From sequence record OQ473815.1: a DNA stretch of 30,153 nucleotides; one strand, given 5' to 3'. Numbering within the stretch: the first letter of the stretch is position 1; every line of letters begins with the position of its first letter. The translations under genes were made by a program, and so were the position numbers. This document shows positions 2,246 through 12,687 of the stretch, piece after piece. The notes below the pieces were generated by a model. The model saw nothing but the letters and a program-made list of their open reading frames with translations. It did not search any database and was not told the origin of the DNA.

Positions 2246-4120
2246 ATGTCCGAACTATCTGATCTTTTGCAAAAGTTTAACGTAACTAAGTTAAACACTT
2301 TTCAAGAGAAGGCTTTGATCGCCTTCTTAAAAAGTAAAAAGAACCTTATTTTATCCGCCCCTACAGGTACTGGTAAAACCCTTTTAATGGAGATGATGCT
2401 ATATTTAAACAATGGTAAAGGAGTCTACGTCTCACCGTTAAAGGCTTTGTGCGATCAGGTTGCTAACGAGCTAGGTAGAGTTACGAGCGTGCAAGAGTTG
2501 ACTGGTGACGTTTACTTAGATGACAGTTCTGACGTTAGCGCTAACGTTGTGGTCTCAACTTATGAAAAGATGGACTCTATACTGAGACGCCCTTACTCGT
2601 GGTTAGATGATATCTCACTTCTCATACTAGATGAAGTTCATAACATGCGTTATCAAAAACGTAGTGAAGCTATAGAACTTGTCTTAGCGTGGGCTTTAGA
2701 GCATGGAGTTAGGATAGTGGTAGGTAGTGCAACTATCGCTGGGCTTTCACGTGTAGAGAACTGGCTTAACGCTGAGATAATATCGCATGATACTAGGAGC
2801 ATTCCCTTATATGAGTTCGTAAAGTATGGTACAGTCTTGATTTCGTCTGATGGTAAGCGTTATCAGTTAGATCGTAGCGTGATTGACTTTATAATTGGAA
2901 AGGGTAAGAATTTGCTGATATTTGAAAGTACTAGGAAACTAGTGGAAAGCGTATACTACACGTTAAAGGGTAGATACGGCAATCAGGTAGAGATGTTTCA
3001 CGGCGGTATGGACTGGGATACTAGGAAAAAGATACTGAGTAAGATAGAGAGCGGTAACGCTAAGATAGTAGTGAGTACAACCGCATTAGGTCAGGGCGTT
3101 AACTTACCGTTCTATGCGGTATGGTTTAGATCAATGAAATTGCCGGAAATTGAAAATGGTAGATACAAAGGGTTTAGATATTTAGATGTTACAGAATATA
3201 AACAGATAGCGGGTAGGGCTGGTCGTCCCCGTTTTGATAAAGAGGGTATGGCGATAATTGAAGCTAAAAATGAGTGGGAAGCTAGATACTTTTTAGATAC
3301 ATATTTAAATGGTAGTATTGAACAAATTGATGGATATTTATCACTTTTCAAGTATATATTAGTACAATTGTCTAGGAGAGGTGTCGCCGATTTTAATCAA
3401 TTATATTCAGGGTTACGTTATACATTTTCACTTAAAGATGTTACACAGAAACAAATGTTAGATATGTTAGAAATAATGAGGTCGTTAGGATTGATATATT
3501 CAGACGGTGTTAATTACAGTATTGAAAAGTTTGGTACTGCGGTCGCATTTACATATTTAGATCTAGAAGATGTAAGATATTATAAAGATAAGTTTGAGAA
3601 AAAAGAATTTGACATATTAGAAGTAATTGCAAATTCGCCTAAAGTTAGAGAACAAAGTAAAAATAATGATGTATTGCCAATATTGGAATATTGGATAAAA
3701 GGTGATGATATTAATGCATTAACTAGATTTAGTAGTAATCTTATGGAAAAAGATATACAAAATATAATAGATATCGCCACATGGCAAGCATATTCAATTT
3801 ATTCACTTATGAAAGCATTAGATGATAATAGGCAATATATAGCGTTAAAAATGTGGTTGAGATTAGAACACGGTGTACCCGAAAATGCGTTAAATTTAGT
3901 TCAAGTTAGTGGAATTGGTCGTAAAATTGCTGTATTTTTAGCAAATAAAGGATATACTAAAAAATCTGAAGTGTGTAGTGATTTGTCAAAAGTAAAGGAA
4001 TTAATGCAAAATGATGAAGTAATGCAAAAACAATATTGGAGAGTACAACAGATTTGTGAAAAAACTACTAGAAAAGCAAAAAGGCAATTAAACGCTAAAA
4101 TAGAGAATTTTGATAAATAA
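2246..4120 (+). CDS. Superfamily 2 DExH helicase, Ski2/Hel308-like, with C-terminal HhH
   Basis: APTGTGKT, SPLKAL, STYEK, DEVH, SAT, FHGGM, STTALGQGVNLP, QIAGRAGR; VSGIGRKIA HhH. Confidence 0.95.
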   Translation: MSELSDLLQKFNVTKLNTFQEKALIAFLKSKKNLILSAPTGTGKTLLMEMMLYLNNGKGVYVSPLKALCDQVANELGRVTSVQELTGDVYLDDSSDVSANVVVSTYEKMDSILRRPYSWLDDISLLILDEVHNMRYQKRSEAIELVLAWALEHGVRIVVGSATIAGLSRVENWLNAEIISHDTRSIPLYEFVKYGTVLISSDGKRYQLDRSVIDFIIGKGKNLLIFESTRKLVESVYYTLKGRYGNQVEMFHGGMDWDTRKKILSKIESGNAKIVVSTTALGQGVNLPFYAVWFRSMKLPEIENGRYKGFRYLDVTEYKQIAGRAGRPRFDKEGMAIIEAKNEWEARYFLDTYLNGSIEQIDGYLSLFKYILVQLSRRGVADFNQLYSGLRYTFSLKDVTQKQMLDMLEIMRSLGLIYSDGVNYSIEKFGTAVAFTYLDLEDVRYYKDKFEKKEFDILEVIANSPKVREQSKNNDVLPILEYWIKGDDINALTRFSSNLMEKDIQNIIDIATWQAYSIYSLMKALDDNRQYIALKMWLRLEHGVPENALNLVQVSGIGRKIAVFLANKGYTKKSEVCSDLSKVKELMQNDEVMQKQYWRVQQICEKTTRKAKRQLNAKIENFDK

Positions 4121-4136
4121 TTTGTTTTGAGTGTAG

Positions 4137-4252
4137 TTATAAAGAGAGTTAATAATAAATGAAAGAAGCTATTTATCAATAGAGCTATTAATAAATGAAA
4201 GAATAAATTAAAGAAGCTATTTATAAAGAGAGTTATTAATAAATGAGAGAAG
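4137..4252. repeat. Degenerate purine-rich direct repeats
   Basis: TTATAAAGAGAGTTAwTAATAAATGArAGAAG at 4137-4168 and 4221-4252 (2 mismatches), third partial copy near 4188-4203; AAAGAAGCTATTTAT twice. Confidence 0.85.
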
Positions 4253-4312
4253 TGGGTATATACTTAAATAGTAATTTTTGGTAAATAATTTCTTTTGAGT
4301 ACACTTTTGTTA

Positions 4313-4501
4313 TAACGTTTTTATTTCTGTTTCGTTTTTAACTTTTTGATTTTGTCTAGTAGAGTAAAGGGGCGGGTAAGTAATAAAATAATTATAAAAG
4401 TAAGAAAATGACTACATATTTAAATAAATGATCACGATAAACACTTTTTTGTAACTTCACTTTTCTCTTAACGTTTTTATTTCTATTTCATTTTTAACTT
4501 T
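4313..4501. repeat. 33-bp T-rich direct repeat, two copies 156 bp apart
   Basis: TAACGTTTTTATTTCTrTTTCrTTTTTAACTTT at 4313-4345 and 4469-4501 (2 mismatches). Confidence 0.85.
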
Positions 4502-4851
4502 ATGTTTCTCTAAACTTATCTAATTTGTAACTTTTTGGCATATTTTATTATTAGATTATAATGCTATTTGTTCAGTAATAATATTACAAAATTTGAAAAA
4601 TTTTTTGTTTAGACTTTTTGAGTGATTTTTTAACAGATAAAGATTCCCTTAAAAAAATATTTCAAAAAATTTTTGATCTTTTTGGATAATAATTCAATAG
4701 GTATAATATTAAGTAGTAATCTTATTGTATTGTTTGTAGTTATTTTTGTTCTATTTTTAATATAATAGTGAGTTTATGATTGCGTTAAAGATATGGATAA
4801 TAACAAAGTTGAGATAAAAATAAGTTGAGAAATGAGAAAAAGGACAAAAAA

Positions 4852-4900
4852 GAGAAAAGTATATAAACGACAAAAGCAAAGAATATAGTAGTGGAAGTAT
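4852..4900 (+). promoter_or_regulatory. Conserved strong (probably early) promoter
   Basis: GAGAAAAG-TATATAAA ... AATATAGTAGTG; TATA begins 41 nt before ATG, same spacing as 7451-7499. Confidence 0.8.
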
Positions 4901-5509
4901 ATGTCAGAGCAGAATCAAGAAACAAATCAACAAAGATATGTTTTGGAAAACGGTTTTTTTATTCTGAGTGACGGGACTAGAGTCCCGGCTATTTCTCTCA
5001 GAAATATATGGAGCCAAATCCATAAAAGCTATGTAGAGTTAAATTACTTATACTCACTGAAAACGCAAAATTTCATAAAGGGAACTATAATTTATAATGA
5101 TGATAATGAGGACAATGACGGATATAACATAGGAATAAGATATAGATTAAGTTTAGGTGATTATATATGGTTCAAAACGAAAATATATAGGAATAGCAAA
5201 GCTATTGATGTTGAAGTATGTGACGCATATCTGAGGATTGATGACCCTGAGGCTTTAATGAGAGATGAATATGCGTCTTATGTCGAAAAAAGGGAATGTG
5301 TTAATTCACTTATTTACTATGAACAAATTAGTAAAATTGTTACCGACAATTTGGTTATCAAGAAGCTTTTGGATATCGCAAAGTCTTATATTGAAACTGA
5401 AAAAGACGATTTTGAAATACCGGAGATAAACTCTAGCGTCAACTACACATGGAGAGATTTTAAACAAGATATACTTTATTTACGACAACCTTATGACATG
5501 TTTGCTTAA
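4901..5509 (+). CDS. Paralogue 1 of uncharacterised ~190-aa family (candidate anti-defence protein)
   Basis: Shares VPAI, LYS..NF.KG, YR..LGDY, ECV.S..Y..QI, FEIP, W.DFKQ.IL.LRQP with the other three copies. Confidence 0.85.
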   Translation: MSEQNQETNQQRYVLENGFFILSDGTRVPAISLRNIWSQIHKSYVELNYLYSLKTQNFIKGTIIYNDDNEDNDGYNIGIRYRLSLGDYIWFKTKIYRNSKAIDVEVCDAYLRIDDPEALMRDEYASYVEKRECVNSLIYYEQISKIVTDNLVIKKLLDIAKSYIETEKDDFEIPEINSSVNYTWRDFKQDILYLRQPYDMFA

Positions 5510-5518
5510 AGTCAAACC

Positions 5519-5540
5519 TTTTTTTTATTTTTCTGTTTTC
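5519..5540 (+). terminator. Oligo-T terminator between convergent genes
   Basis: T8 run and further T tracts right after the 5509 stop. Confidence 0.55.
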
Positions 5541-5659
5541 TATTTTAGCTTTTAATTTTATCAGATAATATGATGATCTAACTATTTTTTAAAAATTAGC
5601 TTTATATTAAAAGACTAAATTAATACAGAAAATTAAGAAAATTATAAATAAAAAAAGAT

Positions 5660-6187
5660 TTAATCTAACTTTCTCAACTCCAATATTGCGTTTTTAATCC
5701 TTTGGTATGGTATGTATTCTTTGTATTCCAAAAAAGGAATTTGAAACTCAAAACTTTCACCCGCTAAAGCTCTCTTTACTATATTGATAATTTTTTGCAA
5801 TATCGGGTTTTCGCTATTCAATTTCCCTATTTCTTCTTTATAAAACACCGATACAGTTTCCTTAATTGTTATATCGTTTATCTTATAATATCTGTTTAAT
5901 ATCTCATCATAATCGTGAAGTTTAAACTCTGTTCTCTGTGCCACAAACCAATAATTCTTATATACACATTGGTATATCACTTTTAACTGTATGTATTCAC
6001 CGAATTGTATTCTATATTTTAATCTATATATTTTATTTTTTTCCTTTCTTATTATGGCATCAACGAAATCCCCCTTATCCTCAGAATAAAGAAGATCTAA
6101 AAAAAATCCGTAAGGATATAAATTAATTGTTGTTTCATAATCTCCCACTTTGGGGATTACGAAACCTTTATAGTGCATGCATTTCAT
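5660..6187 (-). CDS. Paralogue 2 of the ~190-aa family (most divergent)
   Basis: IPKVG, LLYSEDKGDFV, YRIQFGEY, SENPILQKI, FQIP, IKNAILELR; ATG 6187 matches promoter spacing. Confidence 0.82.
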   Translation of the reverse strand: MKCMHYKGFVIPKVGDYETTINLYPYGFFLDLLYSEDKGDFVDAIIRKEKNKIYRLKYRIQFGEYIQLKVIYQCVYKNYWFVAQRTEFKLHDYDEILNRYYKINDITIKETVSVFYKEEIGKLNSENPILQKIINIVKRALAGESFEFQIPFLEYKEYIPYQRIKNAILELRKLD

Positions 6188-6235
6188 TTTTTTCTCACTA
6201 CAATACATTACTTTTTATCTTTATAAGTCTTTTGT
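6188..6235 (-). promoter_or_regulatory. Conserved strong (probably early) promoter
   Basis: Minus strand AAAAGA-CTTATAAA-GATAAAAAGTAATGTATTGTAGTGAGAAAAAA-ATG. Confidence 0.75.
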
Positions 6236-6295
6236 TGTGCTTCAATTTTTAAACATGTTGATAAACTTAAGAATAAAGAAAAAATATAAGTTAAC

Positions 6296-6718
6296 TTACT
6301 GTATCTTTATTCCTTTTTCTTTTAGTTTCTCTATTATGTATTTATCTTCACAACACTCATTAAGATCTTCTTCATAACAATTTTCATTACAGTAATAGAA
6401 ATTTTCAGTGATTTCGTCTATTATTCTGTCAAGCATTTTTAATAATTCTCTTTCTTTCATATTTGTTTTAATATCAACGTCATATGTTGTATCGGGCATA
6501 TATGTTACGCCCTCACTTTGTATATTTTCACTGTACCTTATTGTAATTTCTAATAACGTTTCTTCATTATTTATAATATCTATACTAATATCAAGATCTT
6601 TATTATCTATATTGTATTTAATACTGTTTCTTATTAGTTTTAGAATATGTATAGTTTCTGAGAGTTGTAATACTGTATCTATCGTTATTTGATTTTCTTG
6701 AGTATTCACGTTTTCCAT
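6296..6718 (-). CDS. Acidic protein with C-terminal Cys cluster, 140 aa (candidate anti-defence protein)
   Basis: Own copy of the shared promoter; CNENCYEEDLNECCE motif; ATG 6718 preferred over GTG 6727. Confidence 0.8.
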   Translation of the reverse strand: MENVNTQENQITIDTVLQLSETIHILKLIRNSIKYNIDNKDLDISIDIINNEETLLEITIRYSENIQSEGVTYMPDTTYDVDIKTNMKERELLKMLDRIIDEITENFYYCNENCYEEDLNECCEDKYIIEKLKEKGIKIQ

Positions 6719-6766
6719 TTCTCTCACTATATTATTTTTCTCTTTTGTTACTTTTAAGCTTTTTGC
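6719..6766 (-). promoter_or_regulatory. Conserved strong (probably early) promoter
   Basis: Minus strand GCAAAAAG-CTTAAAAG-TAACAAAAGAGAAAAATAATATAGTGAGAGAA-ATG. Confidence 0.7.
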
Positions 6767-6821
6767 TTATTTCTTTATCTCACAATTGTGAATATAATCG
6801 AATGAAGCGAAAAGTAATAAT

Positions 6822-7388
6822 GTGAAAAAGAGCAAAATAGATTTTTTGATATCCAATAGCGGGTTAAAAGTACCCGCCATAGGTGTCGTTGAATACGATC
6901 AACACATATCTAAAAAATATCTAAAGTTACAATTCCTATACAGTGAAGAGAAAAATGACTTTGTTGAAGGACTAATAAGGAATGGTGAAGTTATTGGTGA
7001 CGTTGACAAAAAGATTAGATTTGATATATTGTATAGAATACCATTAGGCGAATATTTACTATTTGGTATAGAGAGTGCCGGAAACTATGACTATATGGTA
7101 TTTAGCATTTGCAAAATAAGAGTAAATGCCGATAATGTAGAACATTTGATATTTTCTGAGTTTAATGTTAGCGTTGAAAATGAGGAGTGTATAGCTTCTA
7201 ACGTTTATGCAAATCAGTTAGATAAGATAAGTTCTGAAAATAAACTTATTGATAAAATGTTGTATATAGCGAAATTTTACTATTATAATGACGTTGAGTA
7301 TCTTGAGATACCGAAAAATGAAAGCGGAGAGCATTACGAATGGAATGATCTGAAACAGTCTATCCTATACTTGAGACAACCTTTTTAA
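6822..7388 (+). CDS. Paralogue 3 of the ~190-aa family
   Basis: VPAIG, FLYSEEKNDFVEG, YRIPLGEY, ECIAS.VY..QL, LEIP, W.DLKQSILYLRQPF; GTG start; lacks the shared promoter. Confidence 0.85.
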   Translation: MKKSKIDFLISNSGLKVPAIGVVEYDQHISKKYLKLQFLYSEEKNDFVEGLIRNGEVIGDVDKKIRFDILYRIPLGEYLLFGIESAGNYDYMVFSICKIRVNADNVEHLIFSEFNVSVENEECIASNVYANQLDKISSENKLIDKMLYIAKFYYYNDVEYLEIPKNESGEHYEWNDLKQSILYLRQPF

Positions 7389-7450
7389 GCTTAGTTTATT
7401 TTTTTCCCTTTTATTCTTCTTCTTCTTTCGGTTTAACAGTGAAGTGAAAA

Positions 7451-7499
7451 GAGAAAGATATATAAACAATAAAAGAGTAAAGTATTATAGTGATAAGAT
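7451..7499 (+). promoter_or_regulatory. Conserved strong (probably early) promoter
   Basis: GAGAAAGA-TATATAAA-CAATAAAAGAGTAAAGTATTATAGTGATAAGAT-ATG. Confidence 0.8.
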
Positions 7500-8078
7500 A
7501 TGAGTCAACAAACACAACAAAACCAAATAGAAGAAACAGAATTTTTTAATGAATACGATAATTATCTTATTCCTAAAGTGGGGATTCTAGTTAGACAGAA
7601 TAAAATTTATGACGATAACTTTACTGTCTCACTATTGTACTCATTAGACAAAGGCGATTTTGTTAACGGTTACGTTATACCTTTCAAGAATGATGATAGC
7701 ACTATAACCTATAACGTGTTTTATAGAGTTCTATTAAAACAATACGCTCTATTTAATTTATATTATGTTAAACCATACGATTACTATACTGTAGAATTAT
7801 GTCTAATAAACGTGAAGACAGACGATATTAGAGACTTATATATTGATGAGGAAAAAGTTAATTATGAAACTATTGAATGCGTTAGCTCTAGAGTTTACGC
7901 ATATCAACTACATAATATAAAATCGGATAACACAACAATAGAGAAGATATTAGAGTTACTGAGATCTCACACGTTTACTTTTGAAATTCCTCACGTTCAA
8001 CAACCCACTAAAGTGGAATGGCATGATCTCAAGCAATCAGTCCTTAGATTAAGGATACCATTCGATCTAGAAGCTTAA
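7500..8078 (+). CDS. Paralogue 4 of the ~190-aa family
   Basis: IPKVG, LLYSLDKGDFVNG, YRVLLKQY, ECVSS.VY..QL, FEIP, WHDLKQSVLRLR.PF; Gln-rich N-terminus like paralogue 1. Confidence 0.87.
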   Translation: MSQQTQQNQIEETEFFNEYDNYLIPKVGILVRQNKIYDDNFTVSLLYSLDKGDFVNGYVIPFKNDDSTITYNVFYRVLLKQYALFNLYYVKPYDYYTVELCLINVKTDDIRDLYIDEEKVNYETIECVSSRVYAYQLHNIKSDNTTIEKILELLRSHTFTFEIPHVQQPTKVEWHDLKQSVLRLRIPFDLEA

Positions 8079-8110
8079 TTTTTTGTCTAGTCTTCATGAT
8101 GGTGATAGAT

Positions 8111-8458
8111 ATGTCCACACCTCAAGATAAAAAAACAAGAAGTTCCCCCGAATGTGTTTATTTTGAATTCGATCCTTTCAAAATACCTAAAGACGTACAA
8201 AAGGAAATAATTTTTAGTTTTCTTAATAAAAGCCGTGGTAGGGTCAGAGTGAACACAAGTTACGTTACCAATCCTAACGGCGTTTCTGAAGAGATAGCTT
8301 TAGTGAAAATGGTAGTGGGAAGAACTAGTCACTTGTTCGCTTACTTTAGTGCCAGTGCGATGAGAGAAGTGTTAAAGAACGCCGAATACTATCTAGAGAA
8401 AAAAGAGGAATGCGCCGATATCAGTTTTGAAGTGTGGAGAAGAAAGGTTAAAAGTTAA
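8111..8458 (+). CDS. Hypothetical protein, 115 aa
   Basis: ATG 8111 with GGTGA RBS at 8101-8105. Confidence 0.75.
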   Translation: MSTPQDKKTRSSPECVYFEFDPFKIPKDVQKEIIFSFLNKSRGRVRVNTSYVTNPNGVSEEIALVKMVVGRTSHLFAYFSASAMREVLKNAEYYLEKKEECADISFEVWRRKVKS

Positions 8459-8534: not shown

Positions 8535-8882
8535 GTGTCAAACCAAAAACAAAAATTGGTTTATTTAAGTAATGCCTTCAGTCCGGGCATGCTTTCAAGC
8601 TACCCCGTGACTGTGAGGATAGAACAAGTTAGCGAAAGCGAGTTCGCTAACGTTGTGAAGAGCGAGAACGTGGTGAACGCTATAGGGCATCAGGGTACTG
8701 TTGACTTCATTAACGCCAAGTTCAACGCCAAACTGATGATGAATAGGATAACGCTGAAGCTAGGGTCAGGTGATGTGCTTTACATAATACAGTTGCTAAC
8801 GCGTTTGCCAGAGGGTAAAGTGCTAACTAGTGAAGAAGTTGCTAACATTAAGAGCGTATACCTAAAGATAACTGTAATGTGA
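8535..8882 (+). CDS. acrIII-1: AcrIII-1 viral ring nuclease (DUF1874), degrades cyclic tetra-adenylate
   Basis: YLSNAFSPGML, IGHQGT (catalytic His), NRITLKL, QLLTRLPEGKVLTSEE match the recalled SIRV1 gp29 family motifs. Confidence 0.93.
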   Translation: MSNQKQKLVYLSNAFSPGMLSSYPVTVRIEQVSESEFANVVKSENVVNAIGHQGTVDFINAKFNAKLMMNRITLKLGSGDVLYIIQLLTRLPEGKVLTSEEVANIKSVYLKITVM

Positions 8883-11531: not shown

Positions 11532-12188
11532 ATGGCAGGAAGACAAAAACACGTAAAGAGTTTCCTTAGCGAGAGGTCAGAGTACTCATATAAGAGTAAG
11601 CTGACTGGTATATTCTCGACCTACGCTGGAGCTAACAACGCTGAACGCTGGGTAAACTCGATGTATGAGAACTACAAGAAGGTTTTCGCTGACATCTATC
11701 ACAAGGTACACCAAGACCCTGGAGTACAGGACGTCATAAACACGTACTTCGGGAGAGCTTCAAGGTTCTTAGCGTACCAGATCATAAACGAGACCATCTT
11801 CGCAGTGCTTTTAACTAGGAGTGAGACTGGGACGGTTGTGAGTAGGAAGTACGAAAGACAGGGAGTTGATAGGACGGTGGTGAACAAACTCATGTACGCA
11901 ACAACTCTGGCAGTGATGAACATAGTACCGAGGGTTGCGGCAGGTATAATGAAAGCTAGCGGAGGGGTAGCGTTGAGTTCAGGTAACATAGCTGGAATGT
12001 TAACGACGTACGTGATGAGCGGACCACCACTACCCGCGAGCAGTGCAGGTATAGCAGGTGAGACCCAGACTCCAACTGTGCCTGAGACTTACGCCGGTAC
12101 AACGACCTTCTCAACGTCTAACGCCGGTCTCGCTGGGTTACAAGAGATAAGGTCACTCACGTTAAAGAAACAGTTAGAGGCAGTGTGA
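11532..12188 (+). CDS. Major capsid protein 1 (SIFV-like)
   Basis: MAGRQ.H..., K.KL.GIF..Y, Y.NYKKVF..IY.K.H, QIINE.I.AV.LT match the recalled SIFV MCP sequence. Confidence 0.9.
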   Translation: MAGRQKHVKSFLSERSEYSYKSKLTGIFSTYAGANNAERWVNSMYENYKKVFADIYHKVHQDPGVQDVINTYFGRASRFLAYQIINETIFAVLLTRSETGTVVSRKYERQGVDRTVVNKLMYATTLAVMNIVPRVAAGIMKASGGVALSSGNIAGMLTTYVMSGPPLPASSAGIAGETQTPTVPETYAGTTTFSTSNAGLAGLQEIRSLTLKKQLEAV

Positions 12189-12198
12189 GGTGATGTAA

Positions 12199-12687
12199 AT
12201 GGGTAAGAGGAATAGGAGGTTAAGTAAGGCTTCAGTACCTAGGTACGCCCTATCAAGGATCTCGATAAACCTAGGTAAGGCTGGACACATAGTGTCAAGT
12301 GAAGTAGCTAAGAACAGTGACGTGATGAAGCTAGTAGTAGACACCTCAGTGAACGAGGCTGAGAACTGGTATAACAACTACGACCTATATCATAAGGTAA
12401 AGCAGATCGTCAAGGACTACATGGACGAGATACAGTTGCCAACTAGGTTCCAAGGTCTTCTAATGTCTTACGGAGAGAAGATAGTTGCTAACGTTATCGT
12501 AGACTGGAAAGGCATTGACATAACTGACCTACAGGCTCAATACGTAAGGGACATGTCAACGTATCAAAACGGCATAGCTACGCCCACAATCTCTTACGTT
12601 ACTAGAGACGGAAAAAGCAAGAGCTACCAAATACCTGAAATCTTGTCTGAAGTTACGAAAAGGATACTTAGGACCTTCAAGCAATAA
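12199..12687 (+). CDS. Major capsid protein 2 (SIFV-like)
   Basis: RNRRLS.ASV.RY.L.RIS.N.G, FQGLLMSYGEKIVAN.I.DWKG, YVTRDGK match the recalled second SIFV MCP; GAGGTGA RBS. Confidence 0.92.
   Translation: MGKRNRRLSKASVPRYALSRISINLGKAGHIVSSEVAKNSDVMKLVVDTSVNEAENWYNNYDLYHKVKQIVKDYMDEIQLPTRFQGLLMSYGEKIVANVIVDWKGIDITDLQAQYVRDMSTYQNGIATPTISYVTRDGKSKSYQIPEILSEVTKRILRTFKQ

Follow-up and report, generated by a model that had tools for sequence, protein, structure and literature searches.

Four diverged paralogs in an AT-rich island

The DNA analysed here, called the window below, is a stretch of 30,153 nt identical to GenBank OQ473815.1, 'Saccharolobus shibatae rod virus 2' (SSRV2/SIFV3); a second record of the same virus, OP999015, is named 'filamentous virus 3'. 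SIFV3 was described as a lipothrixvirus from Tengchong hot springs with 56 open reading frames (ORFs) (Feng et al. 2023, PMC10101205). Near the left end of the genome lies an island that is variable between related viruses and has a GC content of 0.24-0.29 across positions ~3500-8000, versus 0.40-0.46 in most of the genome. It carries four genes, ORF9, ORF10, ORF14 and ORF15 (Table 1), all annotated 'hypothetical protein' in the GenBank record. A first-pass annotation, made from the letters of the DNA, had described these genes as a four-copy family of unknown proteins next to an AcrIII-1 gene and had proposed them as a candidate new anti-defence family.

The existence of a diverged, four-copy family in both orientations was confirmed by the coordinates, the alignment, BLASTP and a hidden Markov model (HMM) scan, and so was the AT-rich island. 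We observed that the four proteins, three encoded on the plus strand and one on the minus strand, can be aligned over their full length, with the motifs IP.VG, LYS..K.DF, YR..L..Y, EC..S.VY..QL, FEIP and W.DLKQ.IL.LRQP visible in the alignment. Pairwise BLASTP among them gave 24-36% identity with E values from 1.3e-8 to 5e-34, far past chance. When all six-frame stop-to-stop pieces of the window were searched with the family HMM, no further significant or colinear copy or relic was detected, including in the 720-bp spacer. The frame of ORF10 extends to 6208, but both its ortholog P0003 and the distance to the promoter box favour the start at 6187. With a pI of 4.6-5.2 and a net charge of -8 to -12, most copies are strongly acidic; members of the ORF10 lineage are basic. 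None of the four copies had a significant family match in Pfam, PHROGs or PADLOC.

Table 1. Features of the island and its right flank (aa, amino acids; BRE, B recognition element; PWM, position weight matrix; AF2, AlphaFold2).
Feature	Position	Strand	Details
ORF9, paralog 1, 202 aa	4901..5509	+	pI 4.75; alignment, BLASTP, HMM scan
ORF10, paralog 2, 175 aa from ATG 6187	5660..6187	-	basic lineage, pI 8.8; alignment, BLASTP
ORF14, paralog 3, 188 aa from GTG 6822	6822..7388	+	5'-truncated; DNA alignment with L002
ORF15, paralog 4, 192 aa	7500..8078	+	pI 4.8; AF2-modelled copy; AF2 model, Foldseek
ORF9 regulatory box	4846..4900	+	purine-rich BRE (G at -6, A at -3), TATATAAAC, then ATAGTAGTGG, ATG; PWM 31.8 bits
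ORF10 regulatory box	6188..6245	-	AAAAGACTTATAAAG ... TTGTAGTGAG ... ATG
ORF12 regulatory box	6719..6771	-	architecture as in the family boxes; PWM 18.0
ORF15 regulatory box	7445..7499	+	GAGAAAGATATATAAAC ... TATTATAGTGATAAGAT ATG; PWM 29.5
ORF12, acidic 140-aa protein, unrelated to the family	6296..6718	-	four conserved Cys
AT-rich non-coding spacer	4121..4845	.	36/48-nt tandem repeats 4135-4266 and 156-nt direct repeat
ORF16, conserved 115-120-aa gene	8096..8458	+	lacks its own promoter box; no match in PDB or Pfam
AcrIII-1 / DUF1874 homolog (context only)	8535..8882	+	PF08960 (STIV_B116-like) E 2.5e-21; phrog_5063 E 6e-31

The family is rare. In tblastn against 50,697 phage and archaeal-virus records the sole match was the virus itself, and a word-indexed search of 5.8 billion proteins yielded four relatives. 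We also ran the HMM search that had been suggested as a check: a full search of 1.84 billion cluster representatives returned 11 proteins at E <=0.001, from which P0012 (1548 aa) was rejected as a repetitive false positive. All the real matches are on short contigs from metagenomes or metagenome-assembled genomes (MAGs) that are syntenic with the island (L002-L007, L013 and L014), and together with the window they form at least eight paralog lineages in the tree. Near-identical relatives occur in L002 (ENA ERZ1758400) and L004 (ERZ1760229), with scaffold names 'HuN_forest' and 'GD_forest', and other relative contigs were binned to MAGs with the labels Saccharolobus sp. and Thermoplasmata archaeon; both where these contigs come from and how they were binned look doubtful.

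The genes are under purifying selection. For ortholog pairs, the ratio of nonsynonymous to synonymous divergence (dN/dS) is 0.10-0.14 at dS 0.2-2.2 (0.10 for ORF15 versus its L002 ortholog, 0.11 for ORF10 versus that of L004), and therefore the family genes are real and each lineage is maintained. By comparison, ORF16 and the AcrIII-1 gene have a dN/dS of 0.03 and ORF12 has 0.29-0.41, the highest of the island.

Fold and conserved residues of the family

When the family profile was compared with all PDB sequences, the sole matches were AFV1 ORF157 (3II2, 3II3, 3ILD and 3ILE) and the design 3VB8 (E 1.4e-3), an engineered protein built on AFV1 ORF157 that sequence and fold searches returned alike. 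The aligned segment holds the common signature LL[YF]S.K..FV ... Y[KR]L..G.YI.F. Alignment by hhalign of the family with a profile of AFV1-157, SSV-RH A158 and SBFV2 gp08 gave a probability of 94.2% and an E value of 1.1e-7 over 64 columns; A158 is 48% identical to AFV1 ORF157 and gp08 is annotated 'putative nuclease'. Weak and partial PHROG matches of ORF15 and of one metagenomic member (E 0.003-0.009) were to phrog_25994, which is the AFV1-157 family.

The structure prediction called for by the first-pass annotation led to the same protein. The AF2 model of ORF15, built on an alignment of ten family members, has a predicted local distance difference test score (pLDDT) of 84.1 and a predicted template modelling score (pTM) of 0.81; it is beta-rich and consists of short soluble alpha/beta elements only. 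In Foldseek against the PDB, only ORF157 and 3VB8 fell below E 0.001 (E 5e-6 to 3e-5, probability 1.00), and the matches to 3ILE, 3II2 and 3ILD reached E 5e-6 to 1e-5 with a target-normalised template modelling score (TM) of 0.56-0.64 over 159-166 columns. The next match, an unrelated one, had an E value of 0.22. Among the predicted viral structures of BFVD, the significant matches were proteins of SBRV1, SBFV1 and SBFV2 (the 'putative nuclease') and one unnamed entry, with weaker matches in ARV2 and SIRV10. The AFV1-157-type fold is found across lipothrix-, rudi- and fuselloviruses with common hosts.

Since the profile searches, hhalign, AF2 with Foldseek, and the BFVD and PHROG matches converge on ORF157, we assign the family to the AFV1-157 fold as a remote and enlarged branch; the fold is not new. 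Judged from the sequences, the similarity is at the level of a superfamily and not of a family. The label 'unknown' given to these proteins was consequently not borne out, 3II2 providing the link. The statement that they do not resemble AcrID1, AcrIIIB1 or AcrIII-1 did hold: no similarity to these characterised anti-CRISPR proteins (Acrs) was seen in the Pfam, PHROG and PADLOC scans, and no Acr structure was present among the significant PDB fold matches. The AFV1-157 fold, an alpha+beta scaffold, has figured since 2010 as an orphan 'new class of nuclease'. AFV1 ORF157 itself was characterised as a nuclease that acts on DNA in vitro, with Glu86 as catalytic residue, and it distantly resembles a one-layer integrase/nucleotidyltransferase sandwich (PMC4187194).

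We then looked at the residues that the lineages have in common (ORF15 numbering). Y75, K178, F54 and L184 are invariant in all lineages; L46, Y47, S48, L182 and R185 are near-invariant, each differing in one or two cases, and N144 and P164 are conserved in most. An acidic residue (E/D) occupies position 126 in 17 of 19 members, and position 123 is acidic in about half of them. According to the first-pass annotation, the copies would have diversified against variant host targets. Ortholog pairs show ordinary purifying selection, however, and the near-invariance of polar residues across lineages points to a common biochemical site and not to freely evolving binding surfaces; the pattern suggests a common functional site on an otherwise variable surface. 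The strand of E86 is outside the confident alignment, since the hhalign confidence is zero past residue 106 (mact 0.05, mact 0 and global mode). SBFV2 gp08 likewise has no E at the column aligned to E86. Position 84 of ORF15 aligns to K57, the residue mutated in 3ILD, and is occupied in the family by L, W, Q, M, E, D, V, T or I, never by K or R. On these sequences, nuclease activity of the family is neither supported nor excluded.

Promoters, turnover and surroundings of the cassettes

The ~55 nt upstream of ORF9, ORF15, ORF10 (ATG 6187) and ORF12 (6718) share one architecture in the alignment: a purine-rich BRE, TATATAA(A/G)C or CTTA(T/A)AAAG, an A-rich stretch and (A/T)T(A/G)TAGTGA, with the ATG 6-9 nt further on. 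In L002-L007, all family genes and all ORF12-like genes are preceded by this box, while the coding sequences have 21-40% aa identity and their synonymous divergence is saturated. A PWM of the box was trained on the metagenome loci only and then run on the 30-kb window, with 50 shuffles as control. It scored the promoters of ORF9, ORF15 and ORF12 at 31.8, 29.5 and 18.0 bits, the rest of the 30 kb at 13.2 or less, and the shuffles at 17.4 at most. A regular expression (regex) for the box found the sites of ORF9, ORF10, ORF12 and ORF15, four in all, and no others, against 0.43 expected, a count that is weak alone as the expression was post hoc. The promoter type of the family differs from that of the major capsid protein (MCP) gene.

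In ORF9 and ORF15, G is at -6 and A at -3 relative to the TATA box, which is the site preferred by transcription factor B in strong promoters (PMC11065993). According to Bhoobalan-Chitty et al. 2024 (PMC11065993), known archaeal Acr and Acr-associated (Aca) genes are immediate-early, and a regulatory sequence that is specific to the virus and common to these genes surrounds their strong BRE/TATA promoter; a strong promoter with a common regulatory sequence on single genes was used in that study as the criterion that predicts anti-defence genes (ADGs), and the predicted ADGs of lipothrixviruses lie near one genome end. The virus of OQ473815 is outside that study, with no match in its supplement. 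In the window, ORF9, ORF10, ORF15 and ORF12, but not ORF14, are single genes behind a predicted strong BRE/TATA promoter, and the alignment and the PWM indicate a regulatory sequence common to several genes of one genome.

The cassettes turn over between related viruses. L002 has five copies, including lineages of 199 aa and 154 aa that are not in the window, and copy number and orientation vary among L002, L005-L007, L013 and L014. The slot left of ORF12 is filled by a different lineage, in either orientation, across the window, L002, L005, L007 and L014. ORF14 gives a nucleotide-resolution view of cassette loss, namely a deletion between neighbouring cassettes of the island. The DNA of the window and that of L002 are colinear up to GAGCAAAA (6837), where a jump of ~780 bp follows. 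The segment missing from the window comprises a TATA box, the whole 199-aa paralog and, from the ORF14 ortholog, the promoter together with codons 1-9. An AAAA microhomology (6834-6838) contains the junction, and the deletion fused the BRE region of the lost 199-aa paralog to codon 10 of ORF14. Because of this deletion, ORF14 starts at a GTG from former promoter DNA and has no box of its own.

ORF12, whose gene stands among the family copies in all related contigs, encodes a very acidic protein with the invariant residues C110, C114, C122 and C123. Its AF2 model reached a pLDDT of just 60, and no fold or sequence match was obtained; with such a model, no matches and this acidity, the idea of an Aca-like regulator was not adopted. 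To the right, ORF16 begins 17-32 nt past ORF15 and separates the family from the AcrIII-1 gene. The latter gene, which the first-pass annotation had placed next door, is real (Table 1), yet ORF16 intervenes. The AcrIII-1 gene also has its own promoter, unlike the family box, and AcrIII-1 is the Acr with the lowest association to early regulatory motifs (PMC11065993); adjacency to it is therefore weak evidence.

The island comes directly after a PD-(D/E)XK (Cas4-like) nuclease gene (558-1178) and a gene for a 624-aa superfamily 2 (SF2) helicase (2246-4120). The helicase shares 34-39% identity with the betalipothrixvirus 'Holliday junction branch migration helicase', the GC content of its gene declines toward the 3' end, and the order and orientation of the nuclease and helicase genes are unlike those of SIFV2. 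Tandem repeats of 36/48 nt start straight after the helicase stop codon, with a core of ~20-24 nt, GAG(T/C)TA(A/T)TAATAAATGA(A/G)AG, that ends like the 3' end of Sulfolobales CRISPR repeats. A canonical virus-borne mini-CRISPR array was rejected, as the 'spacers' are just 12 and 24 nt long. The two copies of the 156-nt direct repeat (4282-4351 and 4438-4507) are 80% identical and each has, on the minus strand, an ORF12-type promoter-like box (PWM 13.2 and 12.6, under the shuffle maximum) followed by a 22-codon ORF (4236-4304 and 4392-4460), which may represent orphan promoters, micro-genes or small RNAs. A scan of the window detected no Rfam family and no tRNA.

Some of the GenBank gene models can be refined. 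ORF8 (3901-4179, minus strand), ORF11 (6177-6377, plus strand) and ORF13 (6658-6825, plus strand) coincide in part with promoter DNA or with well-supported genes of the other strand and are unlikely to be genes. The preferable starts are 6187 for ORF10, 6718 for ORF12 and GTG 8535 for AcrIII-1, with GAGGTGA just before it.

A candidate anti-defence role and comparison with known systems

Relatives of the fold are present in predicted anti-defence loci of other viruses. In AFV1, ORF157 (2164-2637) is preceded by ORF99 and ORF72, the stop and start codons overlapping. The published list (PMC11065993) gives ORF99 as both an AcrID1 homolog and an ADG, and around it are ORF150 (ADG.28), ORF90 (ADG.29) and ORF95 (ADG.27). 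SSV-RH A158, at 2462-2938 of its genome (L015), is SSVRHp20, i.e. ADGSSV.016 of the early T6 operon, labelled 'hypothetical protein' (PMC11065993, Supplementary Data 1). In SBRV1, gp53 is ADG.11, of type 'ADG/Acr', two genes from Aca8 (gp55) and near the right end (PMC11065993). This protein, the sole 163-aa ORF of SBRV1, is very probably the top BFVD match of the ORF15 model. Three independent virus families (a rudivirus, a fusellovirus and AFV1) would thus put the fold in the same kind of locus, under labels that are predicted. The published ADG tables, in which ADGSSV.016 and ADG.11 are listed, appear not to annotate their link to the 'nuclease' fold.

We give roughly even chances to the interpretation that the AFV1-157 fold expanded, specifically in this lineage, into cassettes that are transcribed independently, are probably immediate-early and have a role in anti-defence or host takeover. 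The genes would be independent single-gene cassettes, each behind a strong BRE/TATA box in the variable AT-rich island at the left end, and their products would most likely be immediate-early, non-structural anti-defence or host-takeover proteins. One site common to all copies, made of Y47, S48, Y75, the acidic residue 126, K178 and R185, would probably bind, and possibly cleave, a ligand with a phosphodiester, for example DNA or a nucleotide. Which host target each copy handles would be set by the diverged, mostly acidic surfaces, and recombination would gain, lose and invert cassettes between closely related viruses. The data establish the homology and fold, the common regulatory box, the purifying selection, the turnover of cassettes and the rarity; early expression, an anti-defence role and any catalysis are what we infer for the family. 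As for the anti-defence function proposed by the first-pass annotation, it gains circumstantial support from the common BRE/TATA box and from the fold relatives in predicted anti-defence loci, and the family is a good, unproven candidate; its novelty is reduced, the fold being already known.

Several points weigh against this interpretation. The regex for the box was composed after the sites were known, and both it and the PWM differ from the published MEME/RSAT pipeline, whose thresholds were not applied. A promoter shared by paralogs could partly reflect duplication of promoter and gene together, although the presence of the box at the unrelated ORF12 speaks against duplication as the full explanation. 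The ADG labels are predictions, and those of fuselloviruses span whole T6 operons, including Cas4-like and zinc-finger genes (PMC11065993). The BFVD entry was assigned to gp53 by its length only, with a weak hhalign match to the AFV1-157 profile in addition (E 0.001, probability 21%). In the proteins themselves, the equivalent of the catalytic E86 could not be fixed, K57 of AFV1-157 is not conserved, and the charge of most copies (-8 to -12) is unlike that of the AFV1-157 group and fits a DNA nuclease poorly. Finally, the dN/dS of ortholog pairs gave no sign of gene-wide positive selection, which was accordingly set aside as a driver.

Another explanation, which we consider unlikely, is that the four proteins are working nucleases of viral DNA metabolism, with an activity like that reported for AFV1-157, and would degrade host DNA or process replication or recombination intermediates together with the neighbouring Cas4-like nuclease and Hjm-type helicase, with no specific anti-defence role. 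The fold of a nuclease with catalytic Glu86 (PMC4187194), the acidic position 126 in the strand that should correspond to that of E86, the invariant K178 and near-invariant R185, and the location of the island directly after nuclease and helicase genes are consistent with it, as is SBFV2, where a helicase gene is also followed by the AFV1-157-like 'putative nuclease' near the left end. However, replication genes are usually single-copy and conserved throughout a virus family, whereas this family is multi-copy, confined to one small clade (11 matches in 1.84e9) and variable in copy number between near-identical viruses; the absence of a conserved K57, the strong acidity of most copies and the unfixed register of E86 also argue against it. 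It is less probable still that the proteins serve in conflicts between viruses (superinfection exclusion), as early proteins which attack or block incoming linear competitor genomes, each paralog being tuned to one of them. Early-type promoters, cassette turnover, a fold that acts on DNA in vitro (PMC4187194) and its spread over lipothrix-, rudi- and fuselloviruses with common hosts would agree with such a function, but a role against host defence fits these data equally well or better and the fold relatives adjoin Acr and Aca genes.

Variable multi-copy families can be receptor-binding proteins and the ORF15 model is beta-rich, so that components of the virion ends, the envelope or the release machinery, varying for host range, were also considered. 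We find this very improbable: the genes are outside the structural module (MCPs at 11532-12687, plus glycosyltransferases), the model has short soluble alpha/beta elements, no significant Pfam, PHROG or PADLOC match was found, the promoter is of another type than that of the MCP gene, and the fold match is a non-structural protein. Hardly any weight remains for decaying or selfish duplicates without function. Although ORF14 lacks a promoter and its N-terminus, and the AT-rich spacer has orphan promoter-like repeats, all four ORFs are intact and residues are invariant over at least eight lineages, and the dN/dS of 0.10-0.14 largely refutes this explanation.

A wider extension of the anti-defence interpretation, also unlikely in our view, would make the AFV1-157 fold a widespread enzymatic anti-defence scaffold of Sulfolobales viruses, with the at least eight lineages seen here each destroying or sequestering a different immune nucleic acid or signalling nucleotide. 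If true, this would be a second enzymatic anti-defence family next to the AcrIII-1 ring nuclease. The genome and its ORFs, the AFV1-157 fold and the idea of promoter-defined anti-defence cassettes are already known; the recognition of the expanded subfamily, its link to AFV1-157 and the recurrence of the fold in predicted anti-defence loci are new. For AFV1 ORF157, a structure and a test-tube activity have been available for 15 years and the biological role is not known. The expansion, the common promoter and the predicted anti-defence loci, together with a structural link that appears not to have been annotated, make a testable hypothesis for the whole fold and add a new candidate family to the archaeal anti-defence proteins, the list of which is very short.

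Compared with known systems, the family resembles the AcrID1 expansion of rudiviruses (SIRV gp02/gp03), in which several diverged paralogs likewise lie together in a variable region at the genome end behind early-type promoters of their own, while AcrID1 is ~100 aa long and has no sequence or fold similarity to it. With the ADG set (PMC11065993) it shares single genes with a strong BRE/TATA promoter within a virus-specific conserved regulatory sequence, clustering near one end of a linear lipothrixvirus genome and poor conservation of the proteins; it differs in that its proteins are bigger than most ADG products and that no aca8-like helix-turn-helix regulator was found in the island. The betalipothrixvirus family of SIFV gp15/gp18/gp20 is likewise multi-copy and located between the helicase/Cas4 module and the core genes, but its proteins are unrelated and ~90-100 aa long. 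SBFV2 is similar in the gene order at its left end, described above.

The nearest characterised protein is AFV1 ORF157, whose relatedness to the family is visible at the sequence level by profiles only. Both have the same fold and the N-terminal signature L-[YF]-S..K..FV ... Y[KR]..(G).Y, and both are in Sulfolobales viruses, near a genome end or in early operons. The family is nevertheless a clade of its own in the tree (support 100/99), with proteins of 175-208 aa (154 aa in one lineage) versus 157-162 aa in the AFV1-157 group, an N-terminal extension, an inserted helix (111-115) ahead of the putative E86 strand and a non-basic residue in place of K57. Most of its copies are acidic, in contrast to the near-neutral to basic AFV1-157 group, and it is multi-copy where that group is single-copy.

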